A stretch of DNA of 64,000 nt. It comes from Thalia democratica (Eukaryota). Of the stretch, positions 18,985 to 28,056 are shown in pieces (within the stretch, counting starts at the first letter, position 1; each line of letters opens with the position of its first letter). The notes below the pieces were generated by a model. The model made no database searches and had not been told where the DNA came from. It saw only the letters and a program-made list of their open reading frames with translations. A program made the translations under genes and the position numbers. Where the stretch lies: contig OZ241831.1 in assembly GCA_965202585.1 (NCBI GenBank), forward strand, positions 17,174,001 to 17,238,000, in the 5' to 3' direction.

Positions 18985-19360
18985 GAGACGGATCAAATAT
19001 GTACGAAGAATTTTTTGCACGAGGGGTCATTTTGCACGAAGACAATTGTGCACGAAGGGTTATTTTTGCGCGAGAATAAAAAAAAAGTATAAAAAGAAAA
19101 GTATTTACCAACCATGGGTAAGGGGTAACATTGATAGTAAAAAAAAAAAATTAATATATAATATGTATATTAATCAAAAAAATTATAAAAATATAATAAA
19201 TGAAACATAAAGAAAACTAAGTTTCCGACCATGGGTTAAGGGTAACAGTAATAGTTAAAAAAAGGAAAAAAATTAAAAAAAAGAGAATTTAAACTCCTAT
19301 AAAAAAAGGAAAAAAAAAGTTACCGACCAAAGGTAAGGAAGGGGTAATTATGGTGATAGA
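18985..19360. mobile_element. Truncated copy of the Mutator-like MITE with TTTTGCACGAAG subrepeats
   Basis: Left terminus GGATCAAATATGTACGAAG, tandem ~20-bp subrepeats and three internal CCGACCAAGGGTAAGGG-like units, as in 36453-37100. Right terminus absent. Confidence 0.7.
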
Positions 19361-21499
19361 AAAATTAATGAAAAAAAAAATCTATTTAAAATTCAAAGTT
19401 AATCGTTTGCTGATAGAAATCCTAGTGAATTAAATTCACTGGAATATATAATAGCAAACTTAAACAGTACTCTTTCTTTATTAAACTAGCGCATTTTTCT
19501 GTAAACGGAGCTCTGTAAAAAAATAAACACTTTAAGGAAAAAATAGAATTTAAAGTAGGTTATGTGTTATTAAAAATATGAATAATTACTATAGATTAAT
19601 AATAGCTACAATAGTTAAACTCGACTATTATAAAACTATATAGTATTTGTAATTATTAAACCTTACTTATGATAAAGTATTTTTTTAATTAAAGTGCCTG
19701 ACTGTTTTTTCTAGACATAAAGAATAAATTATTTATCTTACAATGCAAGGTAAATAAACTTCTTTAATGTTAATGTATTAGAACATAACATTGTAACGAA
19801 ACTTATAAATATTTTTAATTGAACTCTTAATTACCATTTAATCTTATGAATTAGTATTTCTTTAATTTTCATTGAGTGGTTATTATTTTGACTTGTTATT
19901 TTATTTTGCATTTTACTTTACCTTATAATAACTTAGACTTAATAGTTACAAATAATATAGTTTTATAACAGTCGGATTTAACATTATATATTGTATCTAT
20001 TATTAACTATTAACCTGTAGTAACTATTCTCATTTTTAATAATACATATATGCACCTACTTTATCTTCTATCCTTTCCTTACAGTATTTTTTTATTACAG
20101 AGCTTCGTATTACAGAAACATGTGTCAGTTTAGTAAAGAAGGAATACCGTTTAAGTTTGTTATCAAAAAATAATAATAATTTTTTCAACCCGTGCAAATT
20201 GTCTTCCTGGATATTTGACACCTATTCCACTAACTAGAAGTAAAGATAATATGATAAAAAAAATAAAACGAAAATAAGTAATTGAAAAATGAGTAAAAAA
20301 AACTGACGCGAGTTTAAAAAACACTATAAACCGAAGAGATTGTGGTTTATTACATTTAATAACAGGGTTCTGTCGAATTTCCACTTTTGGACTGCGTTTA
20401 GACTACTGAAATTAAAATCAAAATTTCAGTATACATATTATATCAAAAAGTTAAATCTAAAGTCAAACCATTTTATTTCAAATTGTAACAAAACTGATAA
20501 AAGCTAAATATATTAAACTACTTAAAAAATAGTTCTTGCACCTTAGTCTATTTAGTAAATTATTTTTAAATATTATAACTCATTATTTTGTGTTTTAATT
20601 TTCAACATTTTACTAAAACTAAGAAATATACAAGAAAAAAAACTTTGAAAACATTAAAAGATAAACAACAATTTTTTTTTTGGAAATATTGAACTTAAAA
20701 TTAATTTGTTTTTCTGTGTACTGTAAACTAGTTCATATAAGTATTACCGTAATTCTTAAAATCTGGTTTAGATATAGCTTTGTGTACATATTGAATATCT
20801 TATTCAAAATTTTTAATTACTACTTATTAGCAAATTTATAATTTCCAACTCAAGAAACAAACTTGTTTAAGTTTAATTTAAAAGAAATATCTAGTAAATA
20901 AGTAACATTTATTTAAGATTGCGGTATTTTAAACATAAGCACTTTTAAACAAACATAAATGGACATAATATAAACAAAAATTTTATTCAAAGTTGTTTAA
21001 CAATAGAGCAGCTTTATTTTGAAAGACTACAGAAAAATTGTTATTTTCTGAACTTTATTAAATTTTATAAAAATAAGAAAAACATTAAAAAATTTTTCTT
21101 ACCTTTTTGAAAAAATAATGTAATGGTAATTCAAAAAATCAACAGTTATCTTTAGATAAAAATATTAAAGTAAAATTGATATACATAGTAAACTAATCAC
21201 TTATACTAACAAAATAATTATTCAAACATTTTCATAGTTACATCATTTAAAAACTAACACGATTGTTTTAAAGTTTTTGCAATGGACAAGTTCCTTCAAA
21301 ACAAAACAGATTATGTTTTTCACATTTTATCTGTCTTAAATTATTTTAAAAGCATATACAGACAATAAATGCAAAATATTTAACAAAAACACATCAACAA
21401 ACTAAACTTTTCTTTTCAATTAAAGGCTTCAACATCAACAAATGTCAACTTTCCAATTCCTTATTTTTATAGAAGAAACCATTAACATTCAGTGTAGTG

Positions 21500-24013
21500 T
21501 TAGCTCTCATCATCAACTGGGTTTCTGTGCTTGTTGAATTCGTTCACCCACTGGTTCATGGCCTTCTGAAATTCTCTGACGTGCATTGGTTTATCAGTCA
21601 TGCCCACTAACGACAGTATTTCGAGGAACTCGTCGTCTGACGCTTCAAAGAAGAGCTGCAGCTTGTTTGCTCCCGCCTGTCAGTTTCGTTCGTTAAAACT
21701 TAGAACTTTGAAATTTTTTTACTAATCGTTATGCTATTTAATAACAAATTGTTAAATTTAAAGTGTAATAATATAATCATTACCCCTTAAACAACTTATT
21801 TTTTTAGTACTTCCGAAAATAAAAAACTACTACTGTATTATTGGGACTTGTAGTGGGCTGGGCACAATAACTTCAGTTAAATAAATATTAGCTTTTTATT
21901 TTCTATTTTATTAAAAGTTATTTTTCTGGAACTTAAAGTTAAAACAAAATATATGTTTCTAAATTTTTAAACGACATTGTTTTTATTCCTATTCATTAAA
22001 TACTTTAGAGTACTTGTGGGTCTAGTCATATTTTTAAGAGAAAAAAGTATCAGGTTAAAGGTTAGTGTACAATACAAAATGCTTATTAATAGTTATAAAT
22101 ATCTATTTAAAACTTTTATTTGATAATAGAATTATAGTTAATTTAGTTTATAATGTTTGTACGTTATGACCACTATTGGGTTGTATTTTTTGTATACACT
22201 TATGAAAAAAAAAATTTAAATACACTGTTCCTAAAATTTTTATTTTCAAAAGAAAAGTTTAGACAGACTTTGCTACATATTATAAGAAAAGTTTCCTAAA
22301 AAATTGTGGTCTCTATGTAAATGAAAAAGTTTAAAAAAAATTAACATATTTTTAACTATTCAACATTTAAAGTTAATTGTTTGCTAATAAAGATCCTAGC
22401 AAAACAAGTTTACTGGAATATAGAATGACAACAAACTTCAACAGTACTTTTTCTTTATTATTCTAAAATATGTTTCATATATTAATAACATATGATATAT
22501 GTGTTAGTTTAACAAAGAAGAAGTACTGTTTAAATTTGTTATTATTAAATATAGTTTTAGTGATTTTTCAAAGACTAGTCAAACAAAAAAATGTGTTTGT
22601 AGGTTTATCTCGTTAGTTAATTAAAATAAGTATATTTTATAAAAAATTGACTCATAGGTAATACTTCAAGCTTTTATAAATAAGCCAGTGTTAATTTTCA
22701 AAACAAAATTTTTAGACCTCCTATGCTCTTAGCTATAAGTAAGCTAAGCTGTAATTTTTATATCTATATTAACTTATTACAAAATTGTTTATAAAGTTTT
22801 TTAATGACTTTTTATAATTTTGGATGACTGAAATAAATTCTAAAACATATTCTAAAATAAGCATTGTTAACCAGTAGTTATTATGGCCATCATCAACATA
22901 GTTGAGATGTTTTGCACCATCAATAATAATTCATGAACTTTACCACAAGATCAACTACAACAGCATCCGAGAAAACCTATGACCGGTTTTGTCATAACTA
23001 GGACTCATCAGGCAGGCATAGTTGCAAGAAACCGCTGTTGTGATCTACCCAAGCTGGCATAAGTAGGAAGTACTGAAGCGACCGTTTGTGGGTAAAGTTG
23101 ATAAAGTTGAGTCAGTTTTGAATAGTCAAAATAGATTAATATAATTTTTGTGCACAGTTAGGTCATTTTAAATATTAATAAATATAATTTGTGTATTGAA
23201 AACTATACTAAAACAGTTAAGTATTAAAGACCATTTTTTTACTATAACTAGTACAAAGTAAGGCTATATTTGTATTGTACAACTGATAATGATAAAAATA
23301 ATAGTCATATAAATATACTATTTTAACCCTTAAACTTTAATTTAATGAACTTCTATTTAATGAACTGAACAAAATATAATTCAACTAAATGTGCTTGAGG
23401 AAAAAACTTGATCTCAGTTTTTATATAATTTATATGTTATCTGTATTTTCTTACAGTTGCTGCATAAAAATTTAACTAGAAAAGAAAGATACAATGCATA
23501 AGTATGGAAAATTGGTATAAAGTAATTACATATAGGTAGCTTCTTTTCACAAGAAACTACTTATCTTTTAAATAATAACAACTAAGCTATGCTTCATAAC
23601 AAGTTCTCCCAAACTCATTTTTATAATTGCCCTTATTTTTTAATTAAAAAATGATCACTTCCATTTATTACAACCCCAAATTATATAGATTAAGTATCAA
23701 ATCTTTAGTAAATTGTATCTTAGGCCTTTATTTTTTACTTTCCATTACCAACCCTAGAATTTCTAGTGTAAGTTAGTTGTTTCTGCTTTACAAGCTATTG
23801 CCCTTTACTAGATGTTGCTGAATTACTGAAATTGTTCAAAAAGGAGCAATATTGTCCCATTTGAGAAACCCTGCTTCAAAAGACTTAAAATAAATTTTAT
23901 ACCAAAAAAACCTCTTTGAATTTCTGAAAGTACTCAATTAATCCAGCATTTTTCAAGATCACTTGCAAGTGGGATTCTTGAATAATAGTGTCCTGGACTC
24001 CACTTTCACTCAT
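21500..24013 (-). CDS. NAB-family NCD1-domain-only small protein (92 aa, 2 coding exons)
   Basis: Exon 24013-23912 MSESGVQDTIIQESHLQVILKNAGLIEYFQKFKE joins in phase 0 to exon 21676-21500 AGANKLQLFFEASDDEFLEILSLVGMTDKPMHVREFQKAMNQWVNEFNKHRNPVDDES*. It aligns without gaps to NAB1 NCD1 as recalled ([62 protein letters not shown]). Confidence 0.85.
22875..23110 (-). repeat. Dispersed repeat (probable PLE pseudo-LTR or retrozyme-like) containing a hammerhead ribozyme motif
   Basis: Clear similarity to 43590-43710 and 53870-54960 (shared TCAACA.AGTTGAGATGTT, GACCGGTTTTGTC, GGCGACCGTTTGTGG blocks). Confidence 0.75.
22975..23018 (-). ncRNA. Type I hammerhead ribozyme motif, decayed copy
   Basis: Minus strand reads GCCTGC-CTGATGA-GTCC-TAGTTA-TGAC-AAAA-C-CG-GTC-ATAGG. 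The CUGAUGA core is intact. GAAA>AAAA and GTCG>GTCA are CpG-type changes. Other copies supply the ancestral GGAC (54.9 kb) and GAAACCGGTCGTAGGT (43643-43658). Confidence 0.7.
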
Positions 24014-24677
24014 ATCTTTTTTATAAAATTTTCTAGTAGTTATGTAAATATGTTATTTTTTAATATTACACAACATAGATAAAAACTACAAAACACAAAC
24101 ATAATAACTTAAATGTTTTTGAAAAAATAATTCTATAACACTTAAATAAAGATATTTGTGAAAATTAAAACGAAAAACTGCAGTAAAATTTTAATGAAAA
24201 AACTGTCAACATTAAAGAGTAAGTCCTACTTGTGCTAACCAATGTGAAACTTTGAGTTTTTTGTATAAAAGCTGTGTTTTAAAACAGTTGATAGCAACAG
24301 CCATTATTTGTTGCAAACAAGCGAGCTTAAGTGACAGGGTTGCCACTTTTTGAACAAAAAAAGCTGTACTGAGTCATCCTGAGATATTTTCAAAAAAAAA
24401 TCATATTATTAACAAAAATATCTAATATCTAAAATAAAAAAGCATAGTTTTGAATGAAACAAACTGATTTAAAAGATTAAAAAATAGCAAGAGATTTCAA
24501 AAAGTATCAACTAGCCAGTGTTTTTCAAACTACTTGACTTGAAAAAAGTTCAAAATAGCCTGAGTTAGCCATGTAATATTGTCTGCTAGACAGAAATACC
24601 AAGCCTAACAAGCTTAGAGTTGCCACTTTTTGAATAAAAAAAAATTGTCCGGAGTCATCCTGACTTTTATCAAATCC

Positions 24678-25080
24678 TGTTATGGTTAACTTTAGGTGAG
24701 CACAAATATCAAGCTGAAAATATTGTACATTCAATGTCTTTTTAACCATAATTTAGGTTTAAAAATAAACGATACTTTGTTTTAAACAGGCTATATAAAT
24801 ACATAGAGAACTAAATTAATATATTATAAACTAAAATATTTAATCAATTTCATTTTACAACATCATATCCAATATAAGTTATTGTATTGATATAATCACT
24901 TTTATATTGTAAATTAAAATCAATTAAGTATATAAGTTAATTAGTTATGATATACAATTTTAATTTTATTCATGTATTTATGAAAGATAAATTTTTAGCC
25001 TAAAATTATGATTAAATAAGACATCAAATGTATAATATTTTCAGCTTGATATTGGTGCTCACCTATAGTTTACCATAACC
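24678..25080. mobile_element. MITE with GGTTATGGTTAACTTTAGGTGAGCAC termini and apparent 8-bp TSD
   Basis: ~60-bp inverted termini; flanks TCAAATCC / TCAAATTC. Related ends at ~26170-26205 and ~28384-28777. Confidence 0.7.
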
Positions 25081-28056
25081 TCAAATTCTTTTACAAGGTT
25101 TTTTAACTTCTTAATATTTATAAAAATTGAATCCTCAAAAAGTTGGTTATATAAAACAAAATTTTTCTACTAAGTTTGATTTAAAATCTATAAAAAAAAA
25201 CATCCAGAGATTGAAAATAAAAAACCTGAATTAATTATAAAATAACAAAACTATGCTGATTTAGTCTGAGTTATAAAAAAAATTATCTGAGTTATTCTGA
25301 GTGTGTTACAACCCTGCAAACTGTTCTGTATAGAGGGTTGCCATTGACTTTTGGGAAATTTTCTCAATGTTTTTAAAATTTCCACCAGGTCTTTAAAAGT
25401 ACTTGTTTTTGGGTCTATTTTTAGTTTAAGGTCATTTGTTCTTTTGTTATAAAGTTCATATATTTAAATTTTTTTAGTTTTTGTTCCGACAGAATTTTCT
25501 AAATATTGCAAGGAACATTTCCTGATAATTTGAGGTAGTTATCTCAAAAAACGTAGGAGATAGATTTTTAGTGAAATAGTCTATTTTTGCCATTTTAGTT
25601 TGCGCCTCCCATAAGGAACCTATAGTCGCCTCTTACCAGCTATATCTCAAGTAATAACACATATCTCTAAGTAATAAATATTTTTTTTGAAATTAAGGTA
25701 CAAAGTTAGAGTTGATATGCTTATAAACAGTAATTTTAAATATATATAGTTTTTAAATGATTTATTAGCAAACAGCAATTTTTTTCCTATGTCAAAATGT
25801 AATAGTTTTATTTAACTTTGTTTAATAAATAAAGTCCTTGATATTACTGTAGTGTTGTACATATAACTAAATACTAGCTTATTAATTTTAAGTAAGTTAT
25901 TGTATTTACTAAGTTAATAAGTTAAACTGAATTAATTTTTATAATTTATTCACATCAATATGTAACCTACATAAAACATAATACAAAAATAGTTTAAAAG
26001 TCGCATTGTTGAAATGACACTGTTGTATACAGTTGAAGAGTCACCTAAAATTACATTCAGTACTCAGTAGTATAAGTACATAAGCAGGGCTTTGCTTATG
26101 TACTTATTTTCAAATAAAACAGAAAATTATTTAAAATAAAGCTGAAAAATTCCTGTATATTGAATTACACTTCATATTAGTGCCCACCTAAAGTTAATCA
26201 TAACCAAAATTTATTTTGAATTTTTTTAAACTGTATCTATAAAGTATCTTGTAGCTCAGTAAAAACTATACAAAATAAGATCAAATTGTGAAAAAGTGTT
26301 TCACCTCCCTATGCCACTAAACTTAAGTTTAAGGTAAAAAACTGTGTTAAATAGTGTAAAAAAATTGAAAAGATACTGTAAAGCTAATTCAAATGTGTTT
26401 AAAAATAAAAAGATTTTGATGATAATAAAATATTTTTATCTATTAAATTTGATAGATTTTTTATGTCAAATCTAAAATTTTCTACATTTAATATTTATAT
26501 GCACGATTTGGGGCACACAATATTCAACACTATTTTTAGGAAATTTTTCCAATTTTTTATTGATATTCAATATATATTTACTACCAGGTCCAAATTTCTT
26601 CAATATTGTTTTTAAAAGTAATGAGTAATGACATCGGTAAGGTACGCACCCGCGTTAAAAACGCACTAAAAAAAATTTTTTTTCTAAAATTAAATATTTA
26701 TAAACTTTTTACAGGTGTTATAAGAGACGAAGACAAGCTTTTTAAAGCAAAGATAGAAAACGGTAACTACCAGTGACATTTCAACTACGTTTGACATTTT
26801 TGCTGTATCTAAACTTTGTCGTCATATAAATAGAAATTAGTATTTTTATGAAAAATGTACTTGACTAAAACCAAAAAAATAATTAGTTTTAAATTAAGTT
26901 TAGTTAAACCAAAATTAAAATAAACTTGTACAAGAACTGTTTTAAATACGAAATTAATTATACTTACCAGTAGATAAAAGTAATATGCAACTATGTCAAA
27001 AATTTCAACTCTAACATTTATCAAATTTAAATAAAATATAATAACACTTAACGTCATGCCCATGTATTTTTTTAATATTCATCGTTTGCTACTTTTAATC
27101 TGATTTTTCAAATAAAAACATACAAAACAGATTGTGAAGTATAGTTTGTAAGCTTGTTAGATTTATTCAAATATAAGTTAAGAAAATATTGGTTTTAGAA
27201 CTTCGTTTCACGCCAGGTCCGTTGACTATAGTTTACGGTTTCAACTTCTTTTTAAATATTCTGTAAATATAAGTTTTTACTATTAAGTGTATTTTGTTTG
27301 TGTCTATAGTTTTATAGCTGTTTAAGTCGAACCCCCAAATAATTTATTTCTCACGACAAATAACAGTAAGCTCTTTTTAACAATTTTCAAGGAATATAAA
27401 ATTTTTATTAATGAAAGTTCCTTAAAGATTGTCAAGCAGACATATAAAAACGACATAAATTTACTTATTTACAACATCAAACTACTTTATAATAACATTC
27501 TACAACAAAAAGAGCAGTGAGCAGAGTACTATAAAACGAGACGTATTATAACTCCACTCCACCCTTCTTTAGTATAACTGTTTTGATAAGTGTAGGCAAG
27601 TAGTTCTTAAAGGTGGTAATTACATTTCTAAAACAATGCGCAGACAAAACAAACATCACATAGCTGTATTGTAAGTTAATAATTATAAATTTTAATTGGT
27701 TTGAAAAGTTAATACTGTCTGTAGTTAGTCAGGTGTGGTACAAACTCCGAAGATTAAAAAATATTTGATATATCAACTTTTTTGTGAGCTATTGTTATAC
27801 GATGCACCATAAATATAAGATGTTCTTAATAAAATCACTATAACTAATTGAAAATAATTAAAATTTCGATAAATTTACTAGACTACTAAGTAGCAATCCA
27901 CTTGAAAATTAGACTCAATTTTGGGTAATCACCTAATAAAAAACGTTTTGGTTTAACTTTATATATCTTTTGCAATCTAAGGCACTTAAAAAATGACTGC
28001 TATGTTTAATTTTAATTATAAATTGAATGCAGTTAAAAAGCCTAAGCTTTAAAATT

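Follow-up and report, generated by a model that had tools for sequence, protein, structure and literature searches.

Gene structure and domain content

The window, by which we mean the whole 64,000-nucleotide stretch analysed here (about 25% G+C, on contig C7), carries a two-exon gene on its minus strand. Coding exon 1 (23912–24013) opens with an ATG at 24013, preceded 14 codons upstream by an in-frame stop, and its 34 codons specify the N-terminal third of an NCD1 domain (helices 1–2). It is followed by a phase-0 intron of 2,235 nt (21677–23911) with a GT donor at 23911–23910 and an AG acceptor at 21678–21677. Coding exon 2 (21500–21676) supplies 58 codons and a TAA stop (21502–21500), encoding the remainder of NCD1 and an 11-residue tail. 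The untranslated regions, as far as they are reached by RNA contigs of run X1 (described below), comprise a minimal 5′ UTR at 24014–24022 (record 4) and a 3′ UTR at 21316–21499 (record 2), both on the minus strand; neither AATAAA nor ATTAAA was found 3′ of the stop.

Joining the two exons yields a protein of 92 residues, with 10 residues N-terminal and 11 C-terminal to NCD1. Exon 2 matches PF04904 (SAM_NCD1) over profile positions 30–74 of 79 (E = 2.2e-15, 56.8 bits, against a cut-off of 24.3 bits), while exon 1 by itself is too short for a PF04904 score. Against a canonical NCD1 profile built in this analysis from 25 canonical NCD1 domains, residues 11–81 of the spliced protein match positions 5–75 of 78 with 81.6 bits, and exon 1 aligns with positions 5–29. 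As the spliced protein covers nearly the entire profile, NCD1 is complete, with the splice junction lying inside it. The original prediction of a two-exon, 92-residue ORF made up of one NCD1 domain and ending in a stop is borne out by the splice sites, by the PF04904 match above cut-off and by the profile match.

The domain, which exceeds the curated PF04904 cut-off, is homologous with the NCD1 of vertebrate NAB1 and NAB2, Drosophila Nab and C. elegans MAB-10, the NGFI-A-binding co-repressors that work with EGR-type factors. Canonical NAB proteins are about 450–600 residues long and possess NCD2 and a CHD4-interacting region, whereas the window protein has neither: only 11 residues follow NCD1, so that the NCD2 repression domain is absent, and the chain ends at residue 92 without the C-terminal CHD4-interacting region. 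In the NAB genes of many animals an intron splits the codon for the first glycine of GGDD. The intron of the window gene sits 4 nt upstream of this site and differs in phase. That both descend from a single intron is plausible.

The intron also contains, at about 22746–23139, a copy of a very high-copy repeat, on which the DNA runs reach a read depth of about 170,000; on unique DNA they reach about 65. The hammerhead-like core of the intronic copy, CTGATGAG ... AAAACCGGTC, is decayed, and other copies of the repeat have the loose-end consensus GGACGAAACCGGTCG. An Rfam scan of window positions 19000–25500 gave no match at E ≤ 0.01.

Expression and sequence constraint

Four sequencing runs were aligned to the window. 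X5, X7 and X8 are DNA, because they cover the intron continuously, and X1 is a marine metatranscriptome; marine metatranscriptomes were the only RNA datasets found to hold the window sequence. X1 covers the exons of the gene at a depth of about 100–200, together with repeats, and falls to zero on the unique intron and flanks (including 20185–21169). Exon 2 is covered by X1 records 2, 3 and 4 and exon 1 by record 4. The latter (180 nt) runs from 24022 to 23912 and continues from 21675 to 21611, with one differing letter at 21676, skipping the intron exactly at the predicted 23912>21676 junction. Record 2 (281 nt) matches the window colinearly over 21592–21316, passing through the TAA into the 3′ UTR. 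The X1 contigs are 93–97% identical to the window, so that their source is a close relative and not necessarily this species. The gene is real and expressed, the RNA coming from one metatranscriptome of that relative.

The same records bear on whether the 92-residue form is only a minor isoform, the main mRNA using a donor inside exon 2 and encoding a longer protein. The RNA consists of assembled contigs of one run, and such contigs drop rare variants, which leaves some room for this reading. However, record 2 is colinear across the stop, its coverage ends about 184 nt beyond it, and no transcript splicing out of exon 2 to further exons, NCD2-coding or other, was seen among the assembled contigs of this run. 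Homologs in other taxa (below) also end at the place equivalent to the window-gene stop. We consider a longer main product very improbable, and the predicted end at TAA 21500 stands.

Five coding differences between the runs and the window could be itemised. Four are synonymous, at 21509 and 21641 (both X1), 21518 (all runs) and 21611 (X7 and X8), and one, the X1 letter at 21676, is non-synonymous, replacing Ala35 with Thr (A35T); this tally omits another two X1 differences that fall in exon 2, as well as six that fall in the exon 1 piece of the contig. Exon 2 offers 32.7 synonymous and 141.3 non-synonymous sites. Within record 2, differences number 13 in 184 positions of 3′ UTR (7.1%) compared with 2 in 90 coding positions (2.2%), making the coding part about 3-fold better conserved. 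The pattern is suggestive of purifying selection on the window gene and is not a measured dN/dS, because the non-itemised X1 differences remain in exons 1 and 2. A scan of metagenomes for the locus returned no close orthologs; all that it found were canonical NAB genes of other animals, none more than 58% identical.

The host is a pelagic tunicate

Mitochondrial COX1 (contig C1833) reads correctly only when AGA and AGG are translated as Gly, giving the universally conserved motifs FDPVGGGDP, IGGFGN and HLAGVSSI; with AGR as Arg, RRR and similar strings appear instead. AGR as Gly is characteristic of the ascidian mitochondrial code (translation table 13). The nuclear genome holds 358 exact copies of a 16-nt spliced leader followed by GT, as compared with none of a reversed control pattern, and we take the 16-nt sequence to be the Ciona spliced leader. 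The COX1 code and the Ciona-type leader copies together identify the host as a tunicate, and it is a pelagic, salp-like one; the low G+C content and the restriction of matching RNA to marine metatranscriptomes fit a thaliacean. A search of the genome for the GH6 domain of tunicate cellulose synthase gave no match, which is uninformative on the host.

Many of the spliced-leader copies are dispersed and some form regular arrays, such as one on contig C26 that repeats about every 15 kb. At C4:56.84–56.95 Mb and on C757 lie several COX1 fragments full of stops, which are nuclear copies of mitochondrial DNA.

The window had been read at first as probably cnidarian. Mitochondrial code and spliced leader contradict this, and since the host is a tunicate, the framing of the gene in terms of cnidarian wound and regeneration responses does not apply.

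Three NCD1 genes and no detectable NCD2

A six-frame search of the genome with PF04904 found three NCD1 loci. Besides the window gene on C7, these are a long paralog at C1:17991672–17994818 (17.99 Mb; 488 residues spliced) and a second short gene at C6:40756478–40759606 (40.76 Mb; 96 residues spliced). The C1 protein consists of NCD1 followed by about 400 Lys/Ser/Asn-rich low-complexity residues encoded in a single exon, and no Pfam domain besides NCD1 was recognised in it. In DNA of 25% G+C, stops should occur about once in 11 codons and, by hand calculation, the probability of a chance ORF of the length of this exon is near 1e-19. The C6 protein, in which QSDEVR stands in place of the KPxHVR motif, has diverged the furthest of the three and could be degenerating or specialising. 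All three genes are interrupted by an intron in phase 0 at one shared position, after FK(E/Q/N), and therefore arose by duplication at the DNA level and not by retroposition. On sequence comparison the three are duplicates that arose within the lineage.

NCD2 was sought in three ways. (i) PF04905 gave no six-frame match in the genome at E ≤ 1, a search that a very divergent, intron-split NCD2 could escape; in controls, annelid and scallop NAB proteins (P0031 and P0038) scored E of about 1e-51. (ii) Ciona NAB as a protein query returned the three NCD1 loci and nothing else. (iii) The tail of the C1 paralog has no similarity to NCD2, nor to canonical NAB past NCD1. A slowly evolving canonical NCD1 is likewise absent from the genome by the PF04904, PF04905 and Ciona NAB searches.

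These searches decide against a dominant-negative decoy titrating a full-length NAB with NCD1 and NCD2 in a cnidarian, which we now regard as highly unlikely. The NCD1-only architecture that this proposal required is confirmed, but the host is a tunicate by mitochondrial code and spliced leader, and its genome yields neither NCD2 nor a slowly evolving canonical NCD1. With no NCD2 found, there is no canonical NAB for a decoy to act against.

A clade of NCD1-only proteins

An exhaustive HMMER search with exon 2 gave 374 matches among 1.84 billion representative proteins; neither exon 2 nor the long paralog's NCD1 yielded a match in word-index protein searches, and a search of the ESM Atlas returned a generic NCD1 cluster with no recorded taxa. 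The closest complete proteins, P0002 (102 residues), P0004 (97 residues) and P0005 (109 residues), come from marine plankton data as complete ORFs of 97–109 residues, contain NCD1 only and are 58–65% identical to the exon 2 query over the matched stretch. In each, a short tail that is not conserved follows NCD1, and they carry the clade motifs LFE in place of LCE and WVDxLN in place of WVxNP. P0005 is encoded on a 1271-nt transcript contig that opens on a cDNA template-switch adaptor with the 16-nt spliced leader immediately after it, and the contig therefore represents a full-length tunicate mRNA. P0004 lies on DNA contigs of 22–26% G+C, including one that comes from a Tara Oceans metagenome, and its genomic DNA has no intron, in contrast to the window gene.

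In a maximum-likelihood tree of 78 NCD1 columns (support given as bootstrap/SH-aLRT), P0002, P0004, P0005 and the three paralogs group together at 100/98 and the three paralogs alone at 96/94. The NCD1-only state is shared across this clade and is no isolated truncation. Because the outgroups to the paralogs are short, the clade seems to have been NCD1-only ancestrally, with the long tail of the C1 protein a secondary feature; the C1 gene possibly originated when a short ancestor was extended. The window NCD1 is 38–44% identical to those of annelid, tick, frog, Ciona and Clavelina; among themselves the annelid, tick, frog and Ciona domains are 77–90% identical, and that of Clavelina is 65–72% identical to these four. 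The short clade is, by alignment, fast-evolving.

That the protein is small and fast-evolving and has lost its effector domain would also be expected of a decaying NAB remnant, transcribed but without function. Yet the ORF is intact, the substitutions that can be classified are mostly synonymous, the coding part has diverged less than the 3′ UTR, short orthologs stay open in at least three other taxa and three paralogs have been retained. We judge a functionless remnant to be most improbable.

Within the subphylum, the NAB proteins of Ciona intestinalis and C. savignyi (P0188 and P0169; UniRef F6Q318 and H2YF89) likewise have an N-terminal NCD1 but are recorded with NCD2, have a slowly evolving NCD1 and fall outside the short clade in the tree. 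A protein of Clavelina lepadiformis annotated as ‘Nab N-terminal domain-containing protein’ (CAK8678239.1; P0054, 157 residues) resembles the window protein in having NCD1 only, with a short non-conserved tail; its NCD1 is however of canonical type and outside the clade, and the gene model is possibly incomplete. A further protein, P0021 (241 residues, on an ENA contig of 37% G+C), has a canonical-type NCD1 without NCD2, and no NCD2-like word turned up in the 10 kb flanking it on each side. NCD2 may have been lost in tunicates besides this lineage too (P0021, Clavelina P0054). A literature search on NAB in tunicates found nothing.

Among the matches were also four proteins of the soft tick Ornithodoros turicata (P0001, P0003, P0007 and P0008) with two to four NCD1 domains each. 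One of 256 residues has three NCD1 in tandem, and others are 1251–2790 residues long. They represent an NCD1 expansion that took place independently, in proteins without the NAB architecture.

Predicted fold

A sequence search found no solved NCD1 structure, and the fold was modelled on the homolog P0002, which is 58% identical to the window protein. The AlphaFold2 model of P0002 (31-row alignment, mean pLDDT 86) has five helices, at residues 4–18, 22–31, 36–41, 44–54 and 60–89, the last of which extends beyond the canonical domain end. The best 29 PDB matches of the model are all SAM domains (EphA, SHIP2, SAMD5, EphB2, ANKS3, Caskin and others). Against stand-alone SAM chains the target TM-scores are 0.6–0.77 with an rmsd of about 2.2 Å, although the Foldseek E-values are weak (0.2 or worse). 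P0002 is predicted to be a SAM-like five-helix bundle.

Candidate partners and proposed role

NCD1 is the EGR-interaction domain of NAB proteins, and NCD2 and the CHD4-interacting domain (CID) form the repression part (PMC2768752, PMC11554739); a CHD4-interacting C-terminal repression region has been described for NAB2 (PMC11554739). MAB-10, the NAB protein of C. elegans, forms nuclear foci and acts together with LIN-29, an EGR-type factor (PMC10584935). By pattern search and reading of the locus we identified an EGR-type gene with three zinc fingers at C7:15950450–15955200, about 1.2 Mb from the window. Its recognition helices are RTDELNR, RSDHLRT and RSDECKR, and the first finger agrees closely with an EGR1 finger sequence from the PDB search. 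The Gln-rich N-terminal exon of this gene has no informative Pfam match and no NAB-binding R1-type motif was recognised in it; the vertebrate EGR N-terminal domain PF11928 also gave no match, which is uninformative. The original prediction had set the protein against both NAB and EGR: an EGR-type gene is indeed present, but an NCD2-bearing NAB was not found. A possible decoy role is left solely towards the EGR-type factor or the 488-residue paralog.

We propose, with moderate confidence and as the reading we find most likely, that the 92-residue protein, a member of the NCD1-only clade, is an adaptor or cap which lacks the repression domain and acts on an EGR-type factor, the 488-residue paralog or both. 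Of the NAB functions, the protein would keep the two attributed to NCD1 in the literature, binding of an EGR-type factor and association with other NCD1 domains, while recruitment of the machinery for NCD2- and CID-dependent repression would be impossible for it. By sitting on this genome's EGR-type factor, or by pairing with the 488-residue paralog, it would tune the activity of the complex so formed without repressing alone.

The extent of divergence suggests another course of events. Given an identity to canonical NCD1 of 38–44%, as against 77–90% among canonical domains, EGR binding may have been lost. The stand-alone NCD1 would in that case have become a neofunctionalised SAM module, which after the loss of NCD2 moved to new partners and abandoned EGR-type factors. 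The clade sits on a long branch, nearly invariant motifs are altered in the window protein (GGDD to GANK, LCEA to FFEA and HVRRLQKAL to HVREFQKAM) and the third paralog has lost KPxHVR. Against this, the core of the domain is kept (EFLEI, LVGM, HVR, FQKA and W) and an EGR-type gene is still present in the genome. We regard such a change of partners as a real possibility, albeit not a probable one.

The adaptor or cap reading has parallels elsewhere. MicroProteins such as the Id proteins and LITTLE ZIPPER are small single-domain paralogs that poison complexes of their larger relatives. The salp-like genome resembles these systems in that proteins of 92 and 96 residues, each with a single interaction domain, coexist with a 488-residue paralog having the same domain. 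It differs from them in that the long form here looks derived and the 488-residue paralog has no recognised effector domain.

Implications

More speculatively, the NAB of salps may have been rebuilt as a three-gene system of SAM-like NCD1 proteins, in which the tail of the 488-residue protein, basic and disordered, would act as an effector or condensate former and the two proteins of about 95 residues would serve to cap or dilute the NCD1 assemblies that it forms on the EGR-type factor. We think it unlikely that this scheme holds. If true, an immediate-early transcription factor would be under the control of a naturally occurring microProtein switch, in animals with massive asexual budding.

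To our knowledge, few transcriptional co-factors of bilaterians are as conserved as the NAB proteins, which have always been described with NCD1 plus NCD2. What is seen in pelagic tunicates, a truncation and triplication of NAB across the lineage, is a variant within this known family, and an NCD1-only NAB adds a clear case to gene reduction in these animals. Three stand-alone, fast-evolving copies of NCD1 under apparent purifying selection amount to a natural experiment on NCD1 alone, one that could show the domain's own role, be it EGR binding, NCD1 assembly or something new.
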